Sequence record: KX397373.1
Reading direction: 5' to 3' (one strand)
Length of the DNA: 64,000 nt
In this document: in pieces, positions 5,291 through 61,823 of the stretch
Numbering within the stretch: the stretch's first letter is position 1
Layout of the letters: every line of letters starts with the position of its first letter
Program-made: the position numbers and the translations under genes
The notes under the pieces: generated by a model
What the model was told of the DNA's origin: nothing
Seen by the model: only the letters and a program-made list of their open reading frames with translations
Database searches by the model: none

Positions 5291-5330
5291 TACCCGACCT
5301 CCTTGTGGGGTCGGGTATCCTTTATTTGTT
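5291..5330 (+). terminator. Intrinsic terminator-like hairpin
   Basis: TACCCGACC(TC)...(GG)GGTCGGGTA stem at 5291-5317 followed by a T-rich run. Confidence 0.6.
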
Positions 5331-5461
5331 TGCTAAACGCCACACAGCGAAGATAACGTGTGCTAAGGCAACGTATGTACCGCAATCGCTTAAAACTCGT
5401 TACAGTGCGTTTGAGAGCGTTTTTAAGGCATTGAAAAGAAAGTTTGACTCCAATGTTTTTC

Positions 5462-5481
5462 AGATATATATTACCTACATG
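5462..5481 (+). promoter_or_regulatory. Putative early (virion RNAP) promoter
   Basis: AGATATATATTACCTACATG. One of 8 intergenic copies of this motif; contains the TATATTAC core reported for phiKZ early promoters. Confidence 0.75.
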
Positions 5482-5532
5482 AGAGAAAACAATTATCTCT
5501 CTAATCCGACCATTTCCTAAAGGAGTTTTACC

Positions 5533-5778
5533 ATGACTAAAATCGCATTCATCAAAGACATGACCAAATGCTTCGGTATCGCAGTGATGATTCTCGCATC
5601 TGCCATCATTGGCTTCCTGTCTCCGTTCGCCGTAATTGACGGTGTAACCTATCTGACCGGTAACATGGTTATCGGTGCGCTTACCGGTGGTGCATGGGGT
5701 GCAACCTTGCTTGTCGGCTGCTTCATGGGTTGGGACAAAGCACTGGTTAACTACTTGAAAGCCAAATTCAAAAAGTAA
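5533..5778 (+). CDS. Small membrane protein (paralog of 6505-6750)
   Basis: 81 aa with hydrophobic segments; AAGGAG RBS; shares LSPF..D..TYLTG....G...GG.W......GWD..L.N.L with 6505-6750. Confidence 0.8.
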   Translation: MTKIAFIKDMTKCFGIAVMILASAIIGFLSPFAVIDGVTYLTGNMVIGALTGGAWGATLLVGCFMGWDKALVNYLKAKFKK

Positions 5779-5787
5779 TACCCCTCT

Positions 5788-5842
5788 AGGCCACCACGCG
5801 GTGGCCTTTTTAATTCGACCATTATCCCATTAGGAGCAGTAA
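5788..5842 (+). repeat. Intergenic hairpin + TCGACYATT + RBS unit, copy 1
   Basis: GGCCACCACGCGGTGGCCTTTTTAATTCGACCATTATCCCATTAGGAGCAGTA; near-identical to 54581-54633. Confidence 0.85.
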
Positions 5843-6442
5843 ATGAACACAATTGAAATGGCAGTAAAAGCGAAAAACGAAGACCAGCTGGTGAATGCCG
5901 TTCTTTATAAACTGTCCCAAAAGTTCGGACACCAATACGTTTCCAGCGGCTTCCAGAATTTGACCACGCGGCCAAGCGGGGAGTACGTGTTGCCGGAGAA
6001 ACTCCAGGCAGCAAAAACCGATAACTATTACGGAGTCCTGGTACACCACATCCAAGCCGCATTGGCTGCGCAGTATGTGGGCTGTACTGTCCGTGTGAGC
6101 CCGGCGCAATATTACCGCGATGGCGATATTGACCCGATCGGTTTCTTTTGCGTTCATGTTGAACATCCTGACGATGGACAGGTCATCAATTTCGTGGTTT
6201 ATCTTCACCCGCTGGAAGCAGCATTCCACGCGGTGGATTTGAACCGGCTTGTTGAGATGAAGACGCTCGCAACACGCGAAACTCCAATCGTGGTACTTAC
6301 CCACGATATGATTTTAGAAGTAACCGGAATGGACTACGTAGATGGATACGTGATTGATTCCGTCAGCATTGCCGCACATGCCGCAGGCTGGTCAGATACC
6401 GAGCAATATGGACTGTCGTTGTTACTGTCCGCGATTAACTAA
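5843..6442 (+). CDS. Hypothetical early protein
   Basis: 199 aa, AGGAG RBS. Confidence 0.8.
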   Translation: MNTIEMAVKAKNEDQLVNAVLYKLSQKFGHQYVSSGFQNLTTRPSGEYVLPEKLQAAKTDNYYGVLVHHIQAALAAQYVGCTVRVSPAQYYRDGDIDPIGFFCVHVEHPDDGQVINFVVYLHPLEAAFHAVDLNRLVEMKTLATRETPIVVLTHDMILEVTGMDYVDGYVIDSVSIAAHAAGWSDTEQYGLSLLLSAIN

Positions 6443-6504
6443 ACACAACCGGGAGAGGAAGCTCTCCCGTAATTCGACCATTAAGCATAACAGGACACCT
6501 TAAG

Positions 6505-6750
6505 ATGACCGACGCTGAAATCAACTTCACAACACCACTCACGTTCAAACGTATTACCCTGGCCATCATTGCAGTCGTTGTTGTACTGCTGTCGCCTTTC
6601 GTTGTAACCGATGTAACCACGTATTTAACCGGCAGTGAATCCCTCGGGGAACTCATTGGCGGGCTTTGGAGTGTGCTGCTGGTAGCAACCTTTTACTTTG
6701 GTTGGGATACCCTGCTGCTGAACCACCTGCGCACCAACTTCACGAAATAA
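6505..6750 (+). CDS. Small membrane protein (paralog of 5533-5778)
   Basis: 81 aa, hydrophobic; preceded by hairpin 6450-6469 and TAATTCGACCATT. Confidence 0.8.
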   Translation: MTDAEINFTTPLTFKRITLAIIAVVVVLLSPFVVTDVTTYLTGSESLGELIGGLWSVLLVATFYFGWDTLLLNHLRTNFTK

Positions 6751-6800
6751 GCTTTACCCTTAACACAATTCGACTATTAACTATCTCAAGGAATACGACC

Positions 6801-6944
6801 ATGATCTCTCGCAAACACAAACTCGCTATCTATTCTATCGCTGTTGCTGTACTGGTAACCGTTGGCATGATGACCATCAACAATGACTACAACACTTGCC
6901 GCGCTAACGGTAACTCAGTAGCACTGTGCACAGGACGCGGCTAA
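6801..6944 (+). CDS. Small single-TM protein with a C-terminal Cys pair
   Basis: Start moved to the ATG at 6801 (AAGGA RBS): MISRKHKLAIYSIAVAVLVTVGMM...TCRANGNSVALC. Confidence 0.7.
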   Translation: MISRKHKLAIYSIAVAVLVTVGMMTINNDYNTCRANGNSVALCTGRG

Positions 6945-6945
6945 G

Positions 6946-7131
6946 ATGACTTTCTCTGATAACGCGTTCGCTGAATTCCTGTCCAACCCACGTATCAAAC
7001 GCGAGTGGGACAATCTGTCTAATGGCTCCCGTCATCGCCAACACGATGATGAGGTGACGCACGTCACTGCCCAAGTGTTACTGGTGGATTCCACCGGTAT
7101 CGCCTATCCCCAATTCGAAGAGAGTTACTAA
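6946..7131 (+). CDS. Hypothetical protein
   Basis: 61 aa, packed directly between neighbours. Confidence 0.6.
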   Translation: MTFSDNAFAEFLSNPRIKREWDNLSNGSRHRQHDDEVTHVTAQVLLVDSTGIAYPQFEESY

Positions 7132-14349: not shown

Positions 14350-14369
14350 AGATAGATATTATCTACGTG
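14350..14369 (+). promoter_or_regulatory. Putative early promoter driving the nvRNAP beta operon
   Basis: AGATAGATATTATCTACGTG motif copy. Confidence 0.75.
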
Positions 14370-14402
14370 GTTGTATCTATTGGTTTTTAACTGGGATGCG
14401 AA

Positions 14403-15419: not shown

Positions 15420-17195
15420 GTGTTTAAAGATGCGATAAGAAAGATTAAGGAAGACGGTAAGATTGTCCCCTTCAATCGTGCAATCGCGGAAGGTGTCGGC
15501 TACACGCAGGCAAAAGACGGGATACATGACCGTGTGCATCAGATTCTGCGCCGTGAGTTAACTCATGACCGGATTGAGAACCCACGCTTACCCGAAGGTC
15601 TGTCTGTGTTGAACGTCCGCCACATGGCTCCGTTTGAATCATTTATCTACAAACTGTCCAAGTCAGACAGCAACCGTGCGGGAAGAGGGCGTACAGCGCT
15701 GTCAATCGCTGCTACGGACACGTACATGGTCATGGCTACCTTCCGTATACCGGGAGACGGTCGTCCTACGTCGCGTCCAATTAGCCTGCCGTTTATACGG
15801 CGTGGCGGTCTCATGAATTACTTCGGTACCACGTATCACGTTGCGCCGGTAATTCACCAACCGGGTATCTGTCGTGAACATGGCGGTATTTTCATCAACT
15901 TTGACTTCACCCGTAAAGTCTCGTTGAAGTTCTGTAAGAAACCAACGAAGATTTTGGTGAATGGCATGAAGGAGGAATTGTTCCTGCCGGGTACGTCGAA
16001 CTTGTTCGTCTCGAAAAACCCGATAGGTCACGATACCGACGAAAAACCATTGATGTATTGGATGTTCGGACGTTATGGCTTTAAGGAAGCCGTCAAGCGT
16101 TACACCGGTGTTGATGTTAACATCTGGCCTGCATTCAAAGTACCCGATCTCGACTTGAATAAAGTTGCGGTTATAGGTTCGGGCGAACAACAGTACAACC
16201 GTCAGATTCAATACGTCGTAACGGTGCCTGTTGACGCATTACCGAATCTCCACAACACACGTTGGGATCAGAACGAACACTCCCTGCTGATTGCCGTCTC
16301 TGCGTTCTTTAAAGCGGCGCACTATTACGCCAGCAAGCAGAACAGCAAAGGGGGTCGTGCACCAACCCTTCCGGCACTGTTTACCCAGATAAACGAATTC
16401 GCGATGGATGAAGACATTGCTAACTTGAACTCTCCGGCAATTTGGAAGGAGATTCTTGGGCGCAGTATCCTCGGCATGAAACCATCCGACATCGAACTGG
16501 GTCGTAGCATGGGCAGCCACTTTGTGGAATGCGAACGCTATGTCAACAGTACCTTCCGTGGCGAACTGATGGCAAACGATCCGAACATCCCTGATGACAT
16601 GGATATGTTTGACTTCCTCTGGTATACCACGCAGATGATGGTACGTACTCGCCTGACCAAACAAGAAGACATCCCGTCGATGTATGGCAAGCGTTTAACG
16701 GTAACCGATTATCTGCTGCTGGGACAGCGCGGCTTTACCACAACGATCTCGAAGATACGTTGGCGTCTGGGCCAGATGGAAAACCGTACCCCGGAATCCT
16801 GCTCGAAAGCGATTCGTGATGCGCTGAACAAAGAGATTGTGCTGAATCTGGTGTTGCGTAACATCACCGGTAACGGCGGTATCAGTTTCTTTAACGCGTC
16901 AACTGAATCAATGGTATTAGCTGTCTCGACTCATGCGATTGGCCAAACGGAAACGGATGCCAAGCGTACGAAGAAAGGCGGTAAAACGGTGAACCTGAAT
17001 GACCGCACGAAGCACGCCTCCGCGTCGCATCTGGAATGTGGTAATGCCTACTATATTCCGAAGTCGGCACCATTCAAGTCCAACATCCTCAACCCGTACA
17101 TGAAGACGAACCTTCACTTGGTGATGGTACGTAATCCGAAGTTGGCTCCGTACATCAAGCCAACGGAAGAAGACATTGCAAAAATCGGCCGTTAA
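15420..17195 (+). CDS. Non-virion RNA polymerase beta subunit, N-terminal fragment (phiKZ gp123-like)
   Basis: 591 aa, GGAGG RBS. RPISLPFIRRGG...YHVAPVI and TPKSxPxKxxxL-like motif resemble RNAP beta N-terminal regions. Syntenic downstream of the capsid gene. Confidence 0.75.
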   Translation: MFKDAIRKIKEDGKIVPFNRAIAEGVGYTQAKDGIHDRVHQILRRELTHDRIENPRLPEGLSVLNVRHMAPFESFIYKLSKSDSNRAGRGRTALSIAATDTYMVMATFRIPGDGRPTSRPISLPFIRRGGLMNYFGTTYHVAPVIHQPGICREHGGIFINFDFTRKVSLKFCKKPTKILVNGMKEELFLPGTSNLFVSKNPIGHDTDEKPLMYWMFGRYGFKEAVKRYTGVDVNIWPAFKVPDLDLNKVAVIGSGEQQYNRQIQYVVTVPVDALPNLHNTRWDQNEHSLLIAVSAFFKAAHYYASKQNSKGGRAPTLPALFTQINEFAMDEDIANLNSPAIWKEILGRSILGMKPSDIELGRSMGSHFVECERYVNSTFRGELMANDPNIPDDMDMFDFLWYTTQMMVRTRLTKQEDIPSMYGKRLTVTDYLLLGQRGFTTTISKIRWRLGQMENRTPESCSKAIRDALNKEIVLNLVLRNITGNGGISFFNASTESMVLAVSTHAIGQTETDAKRTKKGGKTVNLNDRTKHASASHLECGNAYYIPKSAPFKSNILNPYMKTNLHLVMVRNPKLAPYIKPTEEDIAKIGR

Positions 17196-17226
17196 CAGTT
17201 TTCCCCATTAAGGAGTATGAATTAGA

Positions 17227-18861
17227 ATGAGCATCACTATCGAAGAAGTCACTAACGTCCTGAAGCAGAACCTGTCCCGCGACAACGTGTTGGCCACGCT
17301 GAACCAGGTGATGACTGACAACGGTATGTCTCCCGATCAGGGTTTGAAGGTGGCACGCGCCGTAGGTATCTACGCACAGGCCAAGAAGCTGAACAATCAG
17401 CAGGTTATTCAGTACATCATCGATGCGTACAAAGCCTGTGTGTATCAATCTATCGCCGCAAAAGGCAATACGTTCTCAAGCGACATCCACGGTAAGCTGA
17501 TGTCGATGTGGGGTGATGTGGAGAAGATTATCCAGATCCTGCGTAACGCTAACAGCGGTGGTGGTTTAGGTGGTGGCGGTGGAATCGGTGGGTCTGGTGG
17601 CGGCATCCGTGTCTCCGAAGGACTGACCTTGTCTGCGCCGGAAGTAGGGGTAAGTGCCCAAGCGTCTGCCGGGTTGAAAGTCGTTATGCCGCAAACCGAT
17701 CTCGATTTCGGTAGCGACAACGGGCTGACTTTCGTGAACGAAGCCCCGACTCAGCAAACGCCTGTGGCCCCACAACCGGCAGTAGTCGATCCAGCAACCG
17801 CACCGCAAGCTACTATCAACTTTAATGCACCTGTTAACAACCCAATCGGTGCCGCGACTTCTAAGGGACAGAACATGAGCATGAACGATCCAGTCATTAA
17901 CATTTTGCAGGAGATTGAAGTGGAAGATTACGCAGCTCACGAACTGGTAGCACCGGTCGAGAAAACCAGCGTACCAGCGAAGGAAGCGAATAGCCGCATC
18001 AAGTCTTCGCAGTATGCAGAATCGCGTGACTGGGTTAGTCCGCTGCAAAGCATCATTTCAGGTGAAGATGAAATTGTGCTGTACAAAGGGGCTGGCATTA
18101 TCGTGCGTGCGCGTGACAGCTACCGTCCGTACCTGGTTGGTACCACCGACGCCAGCGTGAATGTGATGCGTGAATTCCTGGCAACACACAACGCCGCGAA
18201 AAGCGATCTCGATGGTCTGACCGAAGTGAACGACGTAGAAAAACTGATGGATCGTGTCATGAAAACCATCAGCAAACTGCGTGGTGCTGCAAAGGCAATC
18301 CATGACTTCGCATTAGAGAAATCTGATGAGCCCGAAGTGGTGGTGTCTGAAGTTGCTCGTTTCGCCAATGCGTATCTGGCGAACCTGACCCTGCTTATTC
18401 ACAACGGTATCTCGCTGGGTACTAACCACGGTACTGACGTCCCAACCGTACCGGGTATCTCGCTGGAACGTGCACCGGACGACATCAACTGGTTTGCAAG
18501 CGACCTCTACACCCAGACTACCGGGGGTAACGGCGTAAGCGAGCACGAAGATTTCTTCCGTGACCTGTTCCTGACAGTGGCTAACTCTATCCGTAAGCTG
18601 ACGCTGAAACTGGATGATAAAGGTCAGGTTGTAAATCTGGTGCAGAGCTGCATCACTGTCGTGGTGCCGGGCATGTATCAATCTGTGAGCAAATATCACA
18701 TGGTTGAAATGGCCTCGTTGGGTAATGCCTCTGAGCCGGTGATCGCGATTTACGAAGCACTGCAAAACGATGTACCGCACTCGCAGGTTATCCTGCAAGT
18801 ACCACAAGGTCAGTTCCTGTTGCTGAGCAACGGCGAACCAACTGCGCCGGTACGCTACTAA
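17227..18861 (+). CDS. Hypothetical two-domain protein with Gly- and Pro/Gln-rich linker
   Basis: 544 aa; AAGGAG RBS; SGGGLGGGGGIGGSGGG linker. Confidence 0.8.
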   Translation: MSITIEEVTNVLKQNLSRDNVLATLNQVMTDNGMSPDQGLKVARAVGIYAQAKKLNNQQVIQYIIDAYKACVYQSIAAKGNTFSSDIHGKLMSMWGDVEKIIQILRNANSGGGLGGGGGIGGSGGGIRVSEGLTLSAPEVGVSAQASAGLKVVMPQTDLDFGSDNGLTFVNEAPTQQTPVAPQPAVVDPATAPQATINFNAPVNNPIGAATSKGQNMSMNDPVINILQEIEVEDYAAHELVAPVEKTSVPAKEANSRIKSSQYAESRDWVSPLQSIISGEDEIVLYKGAGIIVRARDSYRPYLVGTTDASVNVMREFLATHNAAKSDLDGLTEVNDVEKLMDRVMKTISKLRGAAKAIHDFALEKSDEPEVVVSEVARFANAYLANLTLLIHNGISLGTNHGTDVPTVPGISLERAPDDINWFASDLYTQTTGGNGVSEHEDFFRDLFLTVANSIRKLTLKLDDKGQVVNLVQSCITVVVPGMYQSVSKYHMVEMASLGNASEPVIAIYEALQNDVPHSQVILQVPQGQFLLLSNGEPTAPVRY

Positions 18862-29008: not shown

Positions 29009-29098
29009 CTCACCTACAGGGGGGCAACCCCCTGGTTCCTTTATTTTATTTGTCCCCGGTTACTATGACATTAAGCCAGCACGAGCGGGAGAACAGGA

Positions 29099-37230: not shown

Positions 37231-37250
37231 AGATATATTTTACCTAGGTG
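37231..37250 (+). promoter_or_regulatory. Putative early promoter with leader hairpin and TCGACTATT box
   Basis: AGATATATTTTACCTAGGTG, then an AGAGTT/AACTCT hairpin, then TCGACTATT at 37274. Confidence 0.75.
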
Positions 37251-37301
37251 AGAGTTGTACATTGAACTCTTATTCGACTATTAATCTAAAGGAGTATTAC
37301 C

Positions 37302-43044: not shown

Positions 43045-43494
43045 ATGTTTCAAAACTCAGTTGTGTCAACGACGGAATTAGTTGCGTTTAAACGGCGCAC
43101 CTCCCAGGCACTCGAGGAGGAAAACCGTCTTGGTGGAATGAAGGAAGTGGTGGAAGCCTTCCTTAACTGGCCGCACGTTGCTACCCTGTGGTGTAACGAA
43201 GGGCAAACCCGTGTCGAGGGTGGAAAGCATCGTACGCGGAACCATCATTATATTTCGTTTGTGGTAACGCAGGAAGGACTGCATGATCTCGAGAACATCT
43301 ATAGTGCGTGGCAGACTCACCCGTTAAGTGAGCGTATTCAAATCACGCTTTCCAGAATGCGTTTTGGCCCAGCGGATACCGAGACCTTCGGTGGCTGGAC
43401 GTTCAAACTTAACTACCGTCCTGACCCAGAAGTCATCAAGGACGTGTGTGAGCATTGGTTAAAGATCGCCAATTTTACAGATAGCGACCATTAA
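43045..43494 (+). CDS. Hypothetical protein (paralog of the next gene)
   Basis: L.AFK.RT..ALE....G..E...A....P...T.W...G shared with 43517-43993. Confidence 0.75.
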   Translation: MFQNSVVSTTELVAFKRRTSQALEEENRLGGMKEVVEAFLNWPHVATLWCNEGQTRVEGGKHRTRNHHYISFVVTQEGLHDLENIYSAWQTHPLSERIQITLSRMRFGPADTETFGGWTFKLNYRPDPEVIKDVCEHWLKIANFTDSDH

Positions 43495-48559: not shown

Positions 48560-48579
48560 AGATAGATATTATCTCAGTG
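48560..48579 (+). promoter_or_regulatory. Putative early promoter
   Basis: AGATAGATATTATCTCAGTG, followed by an ATGTGT/ACGCAT hairpin. Confidence 0.75.
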
Positions 48580-48639
48580 AATGTGTGAAATTTACGCATA
48601 CCCCAGTCGATATGTATTGTCCCTTAAGGAGCATTTTCC

Positions 48640-52930: not shown

Positions 52931-53153
52931 GCCACGTAAACGTAAAGATACCGCCGTGGTAATGCGCGGAAAGAACGGTGGTCTGGTCGGCTACAATCGT
53001 AATGGTCGAATTGTGATTACACAAGAAGCCATCGATGGGATTCATCTGGTGTACAGTACCGCATACCGTTACCCACAAGCAAATAAGCTGGTGCGTGAAG
53101 TATTACGCAGGACCGAAACACGTTCAGCCTCGAGGGCTATGAATCATGCTTAA
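52923..53153 (+). CDS. Small basic protein starting MLKPRKRK
   Basis: Start moved to the ATG at 52923 after CCTAAAGGAG. Confidence 0.7.
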   Translation: MLKPRKRKDTAVVMRGKNGGLVGYNRNGRIVITQEAIDGIHLVYSTAYRYPQANKLVREVLRRTETRSASRAMNHA

Positions 53154-54110: not shown

Positions 54111-54138
54111 TGTCTCAGCATTGATTAAAAATAATTTC

Positions 54139-54158
54139 AGATATATATTACTTAGGTG
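54139..54158 (+). promoter_or_regulatory. Putative early promoter with leader hairpin and TCGACCATT box
   Basis: AGATATATATTACTTAGGTG, a GAGAG/CTCTT hairpin, and TCGACCATT at 54184. Confidence 0.8.
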
Positions 54159-54213
54159 AGAGTTAATACAAATCTCTTACTAATCGACCATTTAACCTAA
54201 AGGAATTTGAATC

Positions 54214-54580: not shown

Positions 54581-54633
54581 GGCCACCACCCGGTGGCCTT
54601 TCTAATTCGACTATTACCATTAGGAGCATTACC
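54581..54633 (+). repeat. Intergenic hairpin + TCGACYATT + RBS unit, copy 2
   Basis: GGCCACCACCCGGTGGCCTTTCTAATTCGACTATTACCATTAGGAGCATTA; near-identical to 5789-5842. Confidence 0.85.
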
Positions 54634-60986: not shown

Positions 60987-61823
60987 ATGGCGATTTATAG
61001 TCAGTCTCAGCGACAGTATCTCTTTGATGCAATCAACGCGGAGAACCCTGGTGCGATTATGCCCATGGGGTTGAACAACGCGATTATCGGGAAACCGAAA
61101 GTGATTCCAACAACAGAGACTGGAGCCAATACCGAGATTGTCATTCGTGGCCGTCAAGGGCGAGGCTACGCAGGCGGACAAACTTTCCGCTACAAGCGTT
61201 TGTCGCTGAACGACTTATTTAAGAACCTGGTTGCGACGGTGACTTCACCGCAGGCGTATGGCTGGCTGAACAACGATGCGAAGAAACTCGCGTTTGTCCA
61301 AAACGTCAACGCGCGCTATGGTCTTAATCTGGAAGCCATTGATATTCCAGATGTGTACGTATACCTCAACAACAAGAACACGGTCAACGTGTTAGCAACC
61401 TGCGTCCAGTACACCGGTGGGATTACCTTTAACTCGGTTAGAGGGAAGAACTCGCTGGAAGAAGCAATTCTGGATGATGTGTTGAAGGTACTGAATCACC
61501 CTATTGACGTCGACGACCAAAAGCTCTGCGGAACGATGCTGGGTTATAGCGTGGACTTTACAGACGAGCCGCAAATCATGCAGGCGTTTGTGAATGGGCG
61601 TATGGACGTGGGGGCGAACTTTACTTCGGGGGCCAGTGATAACCTGGTGACACTGATGGTCAGTCGTGGGTTACCGTCGTTTGATTTTACCGGTGCCACG
61701 ATTAAGCGCGTGAAAACCACCGCGGAACCACGGGCGAACACCATGTACGATAACGTGCTGGTTATCACGAACGTTAACGATCCTCACGTCGGTGGCGATT
61801 GGCTGCTGCACTACAACGATTAG
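60987..61823 (+). CDS. Virion paralog-family protein 5
   Basis: Same motifs (YKR, VNARYGL, LLHYN). Confidence 0.7.
   Translation: MAIYSQSQRQYLFDAINAENPGAIMPMGLNNAIIGKPKVIPTTETGANTEIVIRGRQGRGYAGGQTFRYKRLSLNDLFKNLVATVTSPQAYGWLNNDAKKLAFVQNVNARYGLNLEAIDIPDVYVYLNNKNTVNVLATCVQYTGGITFNSVRGKNSLEEAILDDVLKVLNHPIDVDDQKLCGTMLGYSVDFTDEPQIMQAFVNGRMDVGANFTSGASDNLVTLMVSRGLPSFDFTGATIKRVKTTAEPRANTMYDNVLVITNVNDPHVGGDWLLHYND

Follow-up and report, generated by a model that had tools for sequence, protein, structure and literature searches.

A nine-nucleotide box upstream of the Shine-Dalgarno sequence in early operons of Erwinia phage Stratton and related jumbo phages

We analyzed a stretch of 64,000 nucleotides (the window), which corresponds to bases 62001-126000 of KX397373.1, the genome of Erwinia phage vB_EamM_Stratton (100% match), and found that a nine-nucleotide box stands shortly before the start codons of about 15 genes of this phage. 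The box is a real, conserved element, established as to its position, its orientation, its conservation and its variation among lineages. Within the 5' leaders it is a tag, predicted to be single-stranded, at the upstream border of the ribosome-binding region, and it is carried almost only by the genes of operons headed by a promoter-like motif, P1 (AGATATATWTTACYTAGGTGAG), which together with its 5' hairpin is the strongest promoter class. We tentatively favor, at somewhat less than an even chance, the reading that the box is an mRNA tag beside the Shine-Dalgarno sequence of immediate-early messages, through which a trans-acting factor would set their translation or decay jointly.

Stratton is an SPN3US-like jumbo phage of the genus Erskinevirus and encodes several RNA-polymerase beta-like subunits. 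Its whole annotated genome was compared with that of SPN3US, with parts of the Asesino, Huxley and ChrisDB genomes and with 48 loci of IMG/VR relatives, and relatives were fished with the P1 motif as the query. Stratton, Huxley, ChrisDB and Caitlin were isolated on a common host strain. A literature search with the box and promoter strings returned unrelated primers only, which agrees with the statement, made in a sequence-only reading of the window, that the box had no known description; a search for transcript maps found none for the SPN3US group.

Copies of the box in the window and in the genome

The pattern YCGACYATT occurs eight times in the window against 1.81 copies expected, and none of 100 shuffles held eight or more. 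Seven copies lie on the plus strand, before gp83 to gp86, gp121, gp152 and gp153, at 27, 28, 31, 31, 28, 30 and 27 nt from the respective ATG, exactly as the sequence-only reading had listed them. That list was right for the plus strand and lacked the eighth copy, on the minus strand. The same reading held all copies to be intergenic, which is true of six of the seven plus-strand copies; the one at 5506 falls inside annotated gp82 (5305-5520, GTG start, 71 aa). This open reading frame shares bases with P1, the hairpin, the box and the terminator that follows gp81, and it is probably a false gene call, because its counterpart in Asesino is cut to 26 aa and is unannotated there. Full leaders, with promoter motif, hairpin, box and AAGGA(G), were found where they had been described, at 5462, 37231 and 54139, and a hairpin does precede six of the seven boxes, the exception being that at 6770; two of these six hairpins are terminator-like. 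In the following list, boxes were placed by motif search and annotation, the P1 copies before gp121 and gp152 by motif search, and the hairpins of gp84, gp121 and gp152 by sequence and folding.

5462-5485, plus strand: P1 promoter motif (AGATATATWTTACYTAGGTGAG type) before gp83, one of seven Stratton copies
5481-5501, plus strand: 5' leader hairpin of gp83, GAGAGA...TCTCTC, read directly from the sequence
5506-5514, plus strand: box CCGACCATT, 27 nt 5' of the gp83 ATG (5533)
5788-5811, plus strand: terminator-like hairpin and T run 3' of gp83 (hairpin itself 5788-5807)
5815-5823, plus strand: box TCGACCATT, 28 nt 5' of the gp84 ATG (5843)
6450-6469, plus strand: hairpin CGGGAGAG...CTCTCCCG 3' of gp84
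6474-6482, plus strand: box TCGACCATT, 31 nt 5' of the gp85 ATG (6505)
6770-6778, plus strand: box TCGACTATT, 31 nt 5' of the gp86 ATG (6801), without an upstream hairpin
37231-37254, plus strand: P1 promoter motif before gp121 (HTH_3 regulator)
37250-37270, plus strand: 5' leader hairpin of gp121
37274-37282, plus strand: box TCGACTATT, 28 nt 5' of the gp121 ATG (37302)
43484-43492, plus strand: possible degenerate copy GCGACCATT, 36 nt 5' of the gp132 ATG (43520); weight-matrix score 11.4, below the clear members
53001-53009, minus strand: exact match within the gp150 coding sequence, on the opposite strand, taken as a chance copy outside the element
54139-54162, plus strand: P1 promoter motif before gp152
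54158-54178, plus strand: 5' leader hairpin of gp152
54184-54192, plus strand: box TCGACCATT, 30 nt 5' of the gp152 ATG (54214)
54581-54603, plus strand: terminator-like hairpin and T-rich tail 3' of gp152 (hairpin itself 54581-54598)
54607-54615, plus strand: box TCGACTATT, 27 nt 5' of the gp153 ATG (54634)

The Shine-Dalgarno sequence of gp83, AAGGAG, occupies 5520-5525. The core of the P1 copy before gp83 is identical in SPN3US, Huxley, ChrisDB, Caitlin and uncultured relatives, and the Asesino ortholog has the box TCGACCATT at the same place. The box in the gp121 leader is identical in the leaders of Asesino gp118 and SPN3US gp165. Membership of the copy before gp132 is doubtful.

The whole Stratton genome contains 15 exact copies, 13 of which lie 18-31 nt 5' of an annotated start on the same strand; the probability that at least 13 of the 15 would fall before starts is 3.7e-26. 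Six of these 13 are outside the window, before gp45, gp72, gp76, gp201, gp271 and gp272. A weight matrix adds two members with one mismatch, before gp20 and gp205, which brings the total to about 15. The information content is in TCGACYATT, with a weaker TAAT on the 5' side and an A on the 3' side, so that the core can be written TCGACYAT[T/C] with TAAT before and A after as the usual flanks; four to five of the nine core bases are G or C. In 13 of the 15 members, 7-11 nt separate the box from the GGA of the Shine-Dalgarno sequence, and within one genome the spacers vary among copies while the core is constant.

These counts strengthen, genome-wide and in the relatives, the earlier proposal that the spacing is tied to the start codon, and a positional comparison with gene starts in Stratton and SPN3US found the box both enriched and conserved. 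It does not occur at a similar frequency inside coding sequences: exact copies outside start regions number two of 15 in Stratton and three in SPN3US, where one more copy lies 39 nt 5' of a start. Composition predicts about eight exact copies per genome, and the non-start copies are therefore about 3-fold rarer than expected (5-6 against about 16, Stratton and SPN3US together), a depletion that hints at avoidance of ectopic sites. In the Stratton annotation, the box was found before no tRNA gene, no structural gene and no gene that follows an opposite-strand neighbor; this agrees with the earlier remark that structural genes lack it, none of the tagged genes being annotated as structural. A search for hexamers enriched before predicted starts, which was noisy, did not recover the box in Stratton; it recovered GACTAT in Machinavirus and TATGAC generally. 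A BLAST survey of other phages with the 43-nt start region gave noise.

Lineage variants and the operons that carry the box

Across eight orthologous pairs of Stratton and SPN3US, the box is 96% identical, against 41% for the 20 nt upstream and 55% for the 7 nt downstream. SPN3US has nine copies before genes, of which all except one belong to P1 operons; eight of the nine stand at orthologous sites, 26-29 nt from the ATG. Asesino also keeps the box at orthologous genes. Each lineage has its own variant at the corresponding position, whether in a P1 leader or after a terminator, and the variants are homogeneous within each genome. Huxley carries GACTWTCGAGGA, and ChrisDB, Caitlin and one uncultured phage carry GACYATCAAGGA, both fused to the Shine-Dalgarno sequence; three other uncultured phages carry CGACTTGTT or CGACTGTTT plus a spacer. 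The GACYAT core is common to all lineages that infect Erwinia and Salmonella. Conservation at orthologous single-copy sites across genera argues for selection. In Machinavirus the element directly abuts the Shine-Dalgarno sequence, about 19 nt from the ATG. This ties it to the ribosome site, and a start site would find no space before the Shine-Dalgarno sequence.

P1 occurs in seven copies in Stratton, each followed by a hairpin whose 5' arm begins in a conserved GTGAG. Among 41 distinct P1 leaders from the relatives, this hairpin persists with differing stem sequences (mean dG -7.3, mean z -2.35). Because the structure is kept across many stem sequences, the hairpin looks like a selected RNA structure, and it is plausibly a 5' stabilizer. 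Every one of the seven P1 operons contains at least one box, and 14 of the approximately 15 members lie no more than 3.7 kb downstream of a P1 in unbroken plus-strand gene arrays. The restriction to early-promoter operons that had been noticed in the window thus extends to the genome, and SPN3US behaves likewise. In five of the seven P1 leaders the box is 36-48 nt from P1. The P1 leader of gp199 (record 165294-165414) is long, 120 nt, and contains no exact box; the counterpart leader in SPN3US (165691-165783) has a terminator-like hairpin followed by a degenerate TCGACTGTA, which stands 20 nt 5' of the ATG.

The fifteenth member follows a second promoter-like motif, P2 (ATAGATATTATCT-N3-TGA), which is intergenic and present in 14 copies in Stratton and 12 in SPN3US, all on the plus strand. 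Most copies precede genes at matching positions in the two phages, polymerase genes included. Three of the Stratton copies are in the window and 11 more are elsewhere in the genome:

13411-13429, plus strand: P2 motif
14354-14372, plus strand: P2 motif
48564-48582, plus strand: P2 motif

P2 is 39-76 nt from the start, and 39-49 nt in eight of the ten clear cases. Its core is nearly palindromic (AGATA-T-TATCT), and with P1 it has the common frame AGATAT..ATTAYC-N4-(G)TGA. Early promoters of jumbo phages contain about 10 nt of highly conserved AT-rich sequence centered near -10 (PMC7598289), a description that both motifs fit. P2 is probably another class of phage-polymerase promoter. Before gp45 the box is 19 nt after the P2 motif, and this arrangement is kept in SPN3US; in P1 and P2 leaders alike the distance from box to ATG stays at 26-31 nt.

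In the stretches scanned for sigma-70 promoters, which covered two of the P1 copies of the window and not that at 37231, sigma-70-like pairs overlap both copies (5444-5472, TTGACT-17-TATATT, 10/12 matches; 54121-54149, TTGATT-17-TATATT, 9/12). These hexamers are probably incidental, because the -35 element is not conserved among the P1 copies. The conserved block of P1 extends far past a -10 hexamer.

The box genes and the first genes of P1 operons gave little indication of function. In a scan of 16 of their proteins against Pfam and PHROGs, all were classed as 'unknown' except gp121, a Cro/C1-type protein with an HTH_3 match (1.5e-09) whose P1 leader and box are kept in Asesino and SPN3US, and gp272, with a weak HD match. 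One box-headed locus differs in size among the phages: SPN3US has a single gene there, Asesino two genes and Stratton four, and each added unit starts with a box:

5533-6944 of the window: cassette locus in Stratton
17016-17485 of comparison locus L008 and 15485-15628 of comparison locus L010: the corresponding loci

Within this locus, gp83 and gp85 are paralogs (37% identity), copies of one duplicated gene whose 81-aa product contains a long hydrophobic stretch. The SPN3US ortholog of gp86 (RefSeq tag gp200, 53% identity) has its box behind P1.

Readings of the box

To examine the structural context of the box, 23 leaders were folded. The box was predicted to be unpaired with a probability of 0.72, against 0.56 overall, and it lies 2-8 nt after a hairpin in eight of 13 copies. 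A conserved secondary structure that includes the box was rejected, the box being mostly unpaired in these leaders. Rfam 15 gave nothing at the gathering score over the whole window; within 5300-7000 there was a chance-level match to isrD (E = 0.41). Both variable positions of the box are C or U, so that a G in a pairing partner would be tolerated. A search for antisense partners in Stratton and SPN3US found as complements only the opposite strands of the boxes themselves and non-conserved matches in coding regions.

If the box is an mRNA tag, a putative sequence-specific trans-acting factor would dock on it in the message. Because the site is within the mRNA covered by the 30S subunit, such a factor would control the access of ribosomes or the lifetime of the message for all of the approximately 15 immediate-early genes jointly. 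As the reader, an RNA-binding protein or endoribonuclease encoded by the phage would be more likely than a component of the host, and its effect could be either early shut-off, as with RegA and RegB of T4, or preferential early translation. This reading is supported by the occurrence of the box downstream of two promoter classes at a distance that is constant relative to the ATG but not relative to the promoter. Its placement, the P1 regulon, selection on the core, the lineage variants, the fusion to the Shine-Dalgarno sequence, the predicted unpaired state, the depletion elsewhere and the read-through in P1 operons (see below) all point the same way. On the other hand, spacing from the ATG carries little weight by itself, because P2 is also rather constant in this respect, and four to five boxes directly follow terminator-like hairpins, which is the classical place for a promoter. 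Furthermore, what follows the box, ATTAcc and then purines, has a loose likeness to the ATTAYC core of P1 and P2; the GACYAT core common to all the Erwinia and Salmonella lineages would allow a host factor as the reader; homogeneity within a genome could partly reflect gene conversion; and depletion elsewhere fits a promoter or a DNA site equally well. Overall, the mRNA-level element proposed in the sequence-only reading is the one that the sequence evidence favors, with an internal promoter, a DNA operator and a mere recombination junction retaining some probability. The same reading suggested a tag for handling in the EPI vesicle or the phage nucleus, and the box may have this role, as its link with the earliest operons would allow. 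We regard as improbable the more specific proposal that the box is an address label for the messages which the injected virion RNA polymerase makes in the first minutes, those of the P1 operons. A phage-encoded factor or ribosomes modified by the phage would read the label, which could direct the transcripts from the early vesicle to ribosomes, prioritize their translation and later silence them as a block. If true, nucleus-forming jumbo phages would have a post-transcriptional code dedicated to their immediate-early class, and this code would co-evolve with its reader in each lineage.

The box could instead be an internal promoter of a further class, used by one of the two RNA polymerases of the phage, so that its genes would be transcribed by read-through from P1 and later from a start of their own just upstream of the Shine-Dalgarno sequence. 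A terminator-like hairpin directly before the box at gp84, gp153, gp72, gp205 and SPN3US gp82 fits this arrangement, and so do the ATTA after the box, which also begins the ATTAYC core of P1 and P2, and the rarity of the box elsewhere. The number of copies, about 15, resembles the 13 mapped middle promoters of 201phi2-1 (PMC11512511), and a tandem early-plus-middle promoter is documented for one gene of phiKZ (PMC8244752). However, terminators that no promoter could follow are common in these operons: gp90, gp206, gp274 and the gene at position 5606 of Huxley locus L035 abut terminators and leave no room for a promoter. Read-through must therefore be normal in P1 operons, and a terminator before the box requires no promoter. 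In Machinavirus, where the element abuts the Shine-Dalgarno sequence, a start 5-10 nt downstream would delete that sequence; phiKZ leaders are typically 31-40 nt long and none is leaderless (PMC8244752). The box is not AT-rich and lacks the late TATG (PMC7598289), and five of the seven P1 leaders would have to hold a second promoter 30-40 nt behind the first. Its spacing tracks the ATG, and tRNA genes, structural genes and genes after an opposite-strand neighbor are all without it. We therefore consider an internal promoter unlikely. A promoter for host sigma-70 was rejected on inspection, because TCGACY as the -35 element would place the start site inside the gene; in the scanned stretches, no sigma-70-type promoter was called at the boxes.

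The box could also be a processing site, at which a host or phage endoribonuclease would cut in or next to the box and thereby free each cistron from the hairpin-capped fragment upstream or inactivate early messages. The motif is predicted to be single-stranded and follows a hairpin by 2-8 nt, so that the upstream product would keep a protective 3' hairpin; it is depleted elsewhere; and, like the RegB sites of T4, it occupies intergenic start regions of early genes (PMC3014915). A cut here would strip the 5' hairpin from P1 leaders, which looks stabilizing, and no candidate nuclease was identified. RNase E prefers R-N-cut-W-U-U, and by inspection the box misfits this preference, with C two positions before AUU. 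Processing would be a sub-case of the RNA-level model, inseparable from it by sequence, and as a reading of its own we judge it rather unlikely.

The cassette locus suggests another view, in which the box is a cassette core with no regulatory role of its own, kept by recombination or gene conversion, and serves as a short homology by which small early genes are inserted or swapped, in the manner of PeSL. Growth of one locus by box-headed units (one, two and four genes), the paralogy of gp83 and gp85 and the homogeneity of the variants within each genome are what it would lead one to expect. Yet only 9-13 nt are constant, and the flanks differ among copies and genera (96% against 41-55%), although conversion tracts should homogenize the flanks as well. 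Homology this short is a poor substrate for recombination, and conservation at orthologous single-copy sites across genera indicates selection. Recombination alone would not account for nine fixed nucleotides amid drifting flanks, and we give this view little chance.

Still less probable is a DNA operator, to which a phage protein such as gp121 would bind, blocking elongation and shutting off P1 operons. As an HTH_3 protein (1.5e-09) with a conserved P1 leader and box, gp121 would then be autoregulated, and the box is depleted elsewhere and flanked in SPN3US by TAAT and ATTA, a short inverted repeat. The core itself is asymmetric, however, all functional copies have one orientation, and the register of the flanks differs by one base between Stratton and SPN3US. 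Moreover, a roadblock needs neither a position that follows the Shine-Dalgarno sequence and the ATG nor the fusion seen in Machinavirus.

The least probable reading, which we consider very doubtful, is an enhancer of translation by host ribosomes of the T7 epsilon kind, acting through rRNA pairing or S1 binding: the box does lie just upstream of the Shine-Dalgarno sequence, it is followed by an A/U-rich spacer that we take, by eye, to resemble the T7 gene 10 leader, and one variant with its flank (TATTAAC) matches 16S rRNA around position 460, but the constant UCGACY is not A/U-rich and phages of one host strain differ in both variant and spacing. Pairing with rRNA was rejected, because complementarity to E. 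coli 16S, 23S and 5S rRNA was not above that of shuffled controls; the best Watson-Crick run with 16S was 6-7 nt against a mean of 6.8 for shuffled 16-mers, and the complement of the core is absent from the 16S, 23S and 5S rRNA of E. coli K-12.

Comparison with known systems

The sequence-only reading had compared the leaders with PeSL, a composite terminator/early-promoter motif of T4-like phages (PMC2839356, PMC4122927). The comparison is apt as to cassette shuffling. Both are short repeated modules with a stem-loop before small early open reading frames of unknown function, and copies of both bound insertions or replacements between close relatives, as in the box locus that goes from one to two to four genes (PMC4122927). 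It fails in anatomy. PeSL is read by the sigma-70 RNA polymerase of the host, whereas P1 is of the phage-polymerase type, and PeSL has no counterpart of the box next to the Shine-Dalgarno sequence, whereas box leaders run in the order P1, hairpin, box, Shine-Dalgarno sequence. Because P1 precedes the hairpin, the hairpin would form the 5' end of the message; after terminators, the box alone follows, without promoter-like features.

For the favored mRNA tag, the nearest working analogues are RegA and RegB of T4, taken as analogies, and the box has the defining features of neither. RegA allows joint repression of about 30 early messages, each of which has an unstructured RNA site in its translation-initiation region (PMC3014915). 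The box is similarly predicted to be unpaired and is located in the start regions of about 15 early genes, but a RegA site overlaps or adjoins the AUG and is rich in A+U, with no sharp consensus, whereas the box is 18-31 nt upstream and has a sharp 9-nt core that contains C and G. The endoribonuclease RegB, which inactivates early messages as a class, has sites of the form GG*AGRAYARAA in the intergenic starts of early genes (PMC3014915). Like these, the box is a long motif in early-gene start regions; unlike these, which are cut within the Shine-Dalgarno sequence and are A-rich on the 3' side, it has another sequence and lies 5' of the Shine-Dalgarno sequence.

In the nut sites of lambda and the boxA-boxB elements of rrn operons, a leader behind early promoters likewise combines a hairpin with a short linear box. 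That arrangement recurs here, but the box has no sequence likeness to boxA, is tied to each ATG and often follows terminators, and the polymerases are non-canonical. Promoters of the jumbo phages phiKZ, 201phi2-1 and AR9 are likewise short motifs repeated before one temporal class of genes (PMC7598289, PMC8244752, PMC11512511). The box differs from them in that it is not AT-rich, has neither TATG nor TACT, lies downstream of promoters and next to the Shine-Dalgarno sequence, and in one genus is fused to that sequence.

The box thus belongs to a known kind, the regulatory cassettes of phage early genes, and what is new is the motif, its tie to the Shine-Dalgarno sequence and its lineage-specific variants. 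For nucleus-forming jumbo phages, nearly all that is known of regulation concerns promoters, and it comes only from phages of Pseudomonas and Bacillus. Nearly all genes of the immediate-early operons that are initiated independently bear the box, which so defines a class by sequence in the SPN3US group. Its nine nucleotides provide a handle for finding the reader factor and a compact part for expression cassettes in phages of this group, and the lineage-specific variants are a ready co-variation test for a reader protein.

Late promoters of the phiKZ type have T(-3)ATG(+1) at the start site (PMC7598289). No TATG is present in the box or its variants; a separate motif, TATGAC, stands before other genes. 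In Stratton, in SPN3US and in uncultured relatives it is enriched at 12-42 nt 5' of predicted starts; the complete genomes of Stratton and SPN3US each have eight such copies where about one is expected. Copies are found at 29063-29069 of the window, before gp109, and at 61710, 158952 and other positions of the record. TATGAC may be the counterpart of the late TATG promoter of phiKZ.
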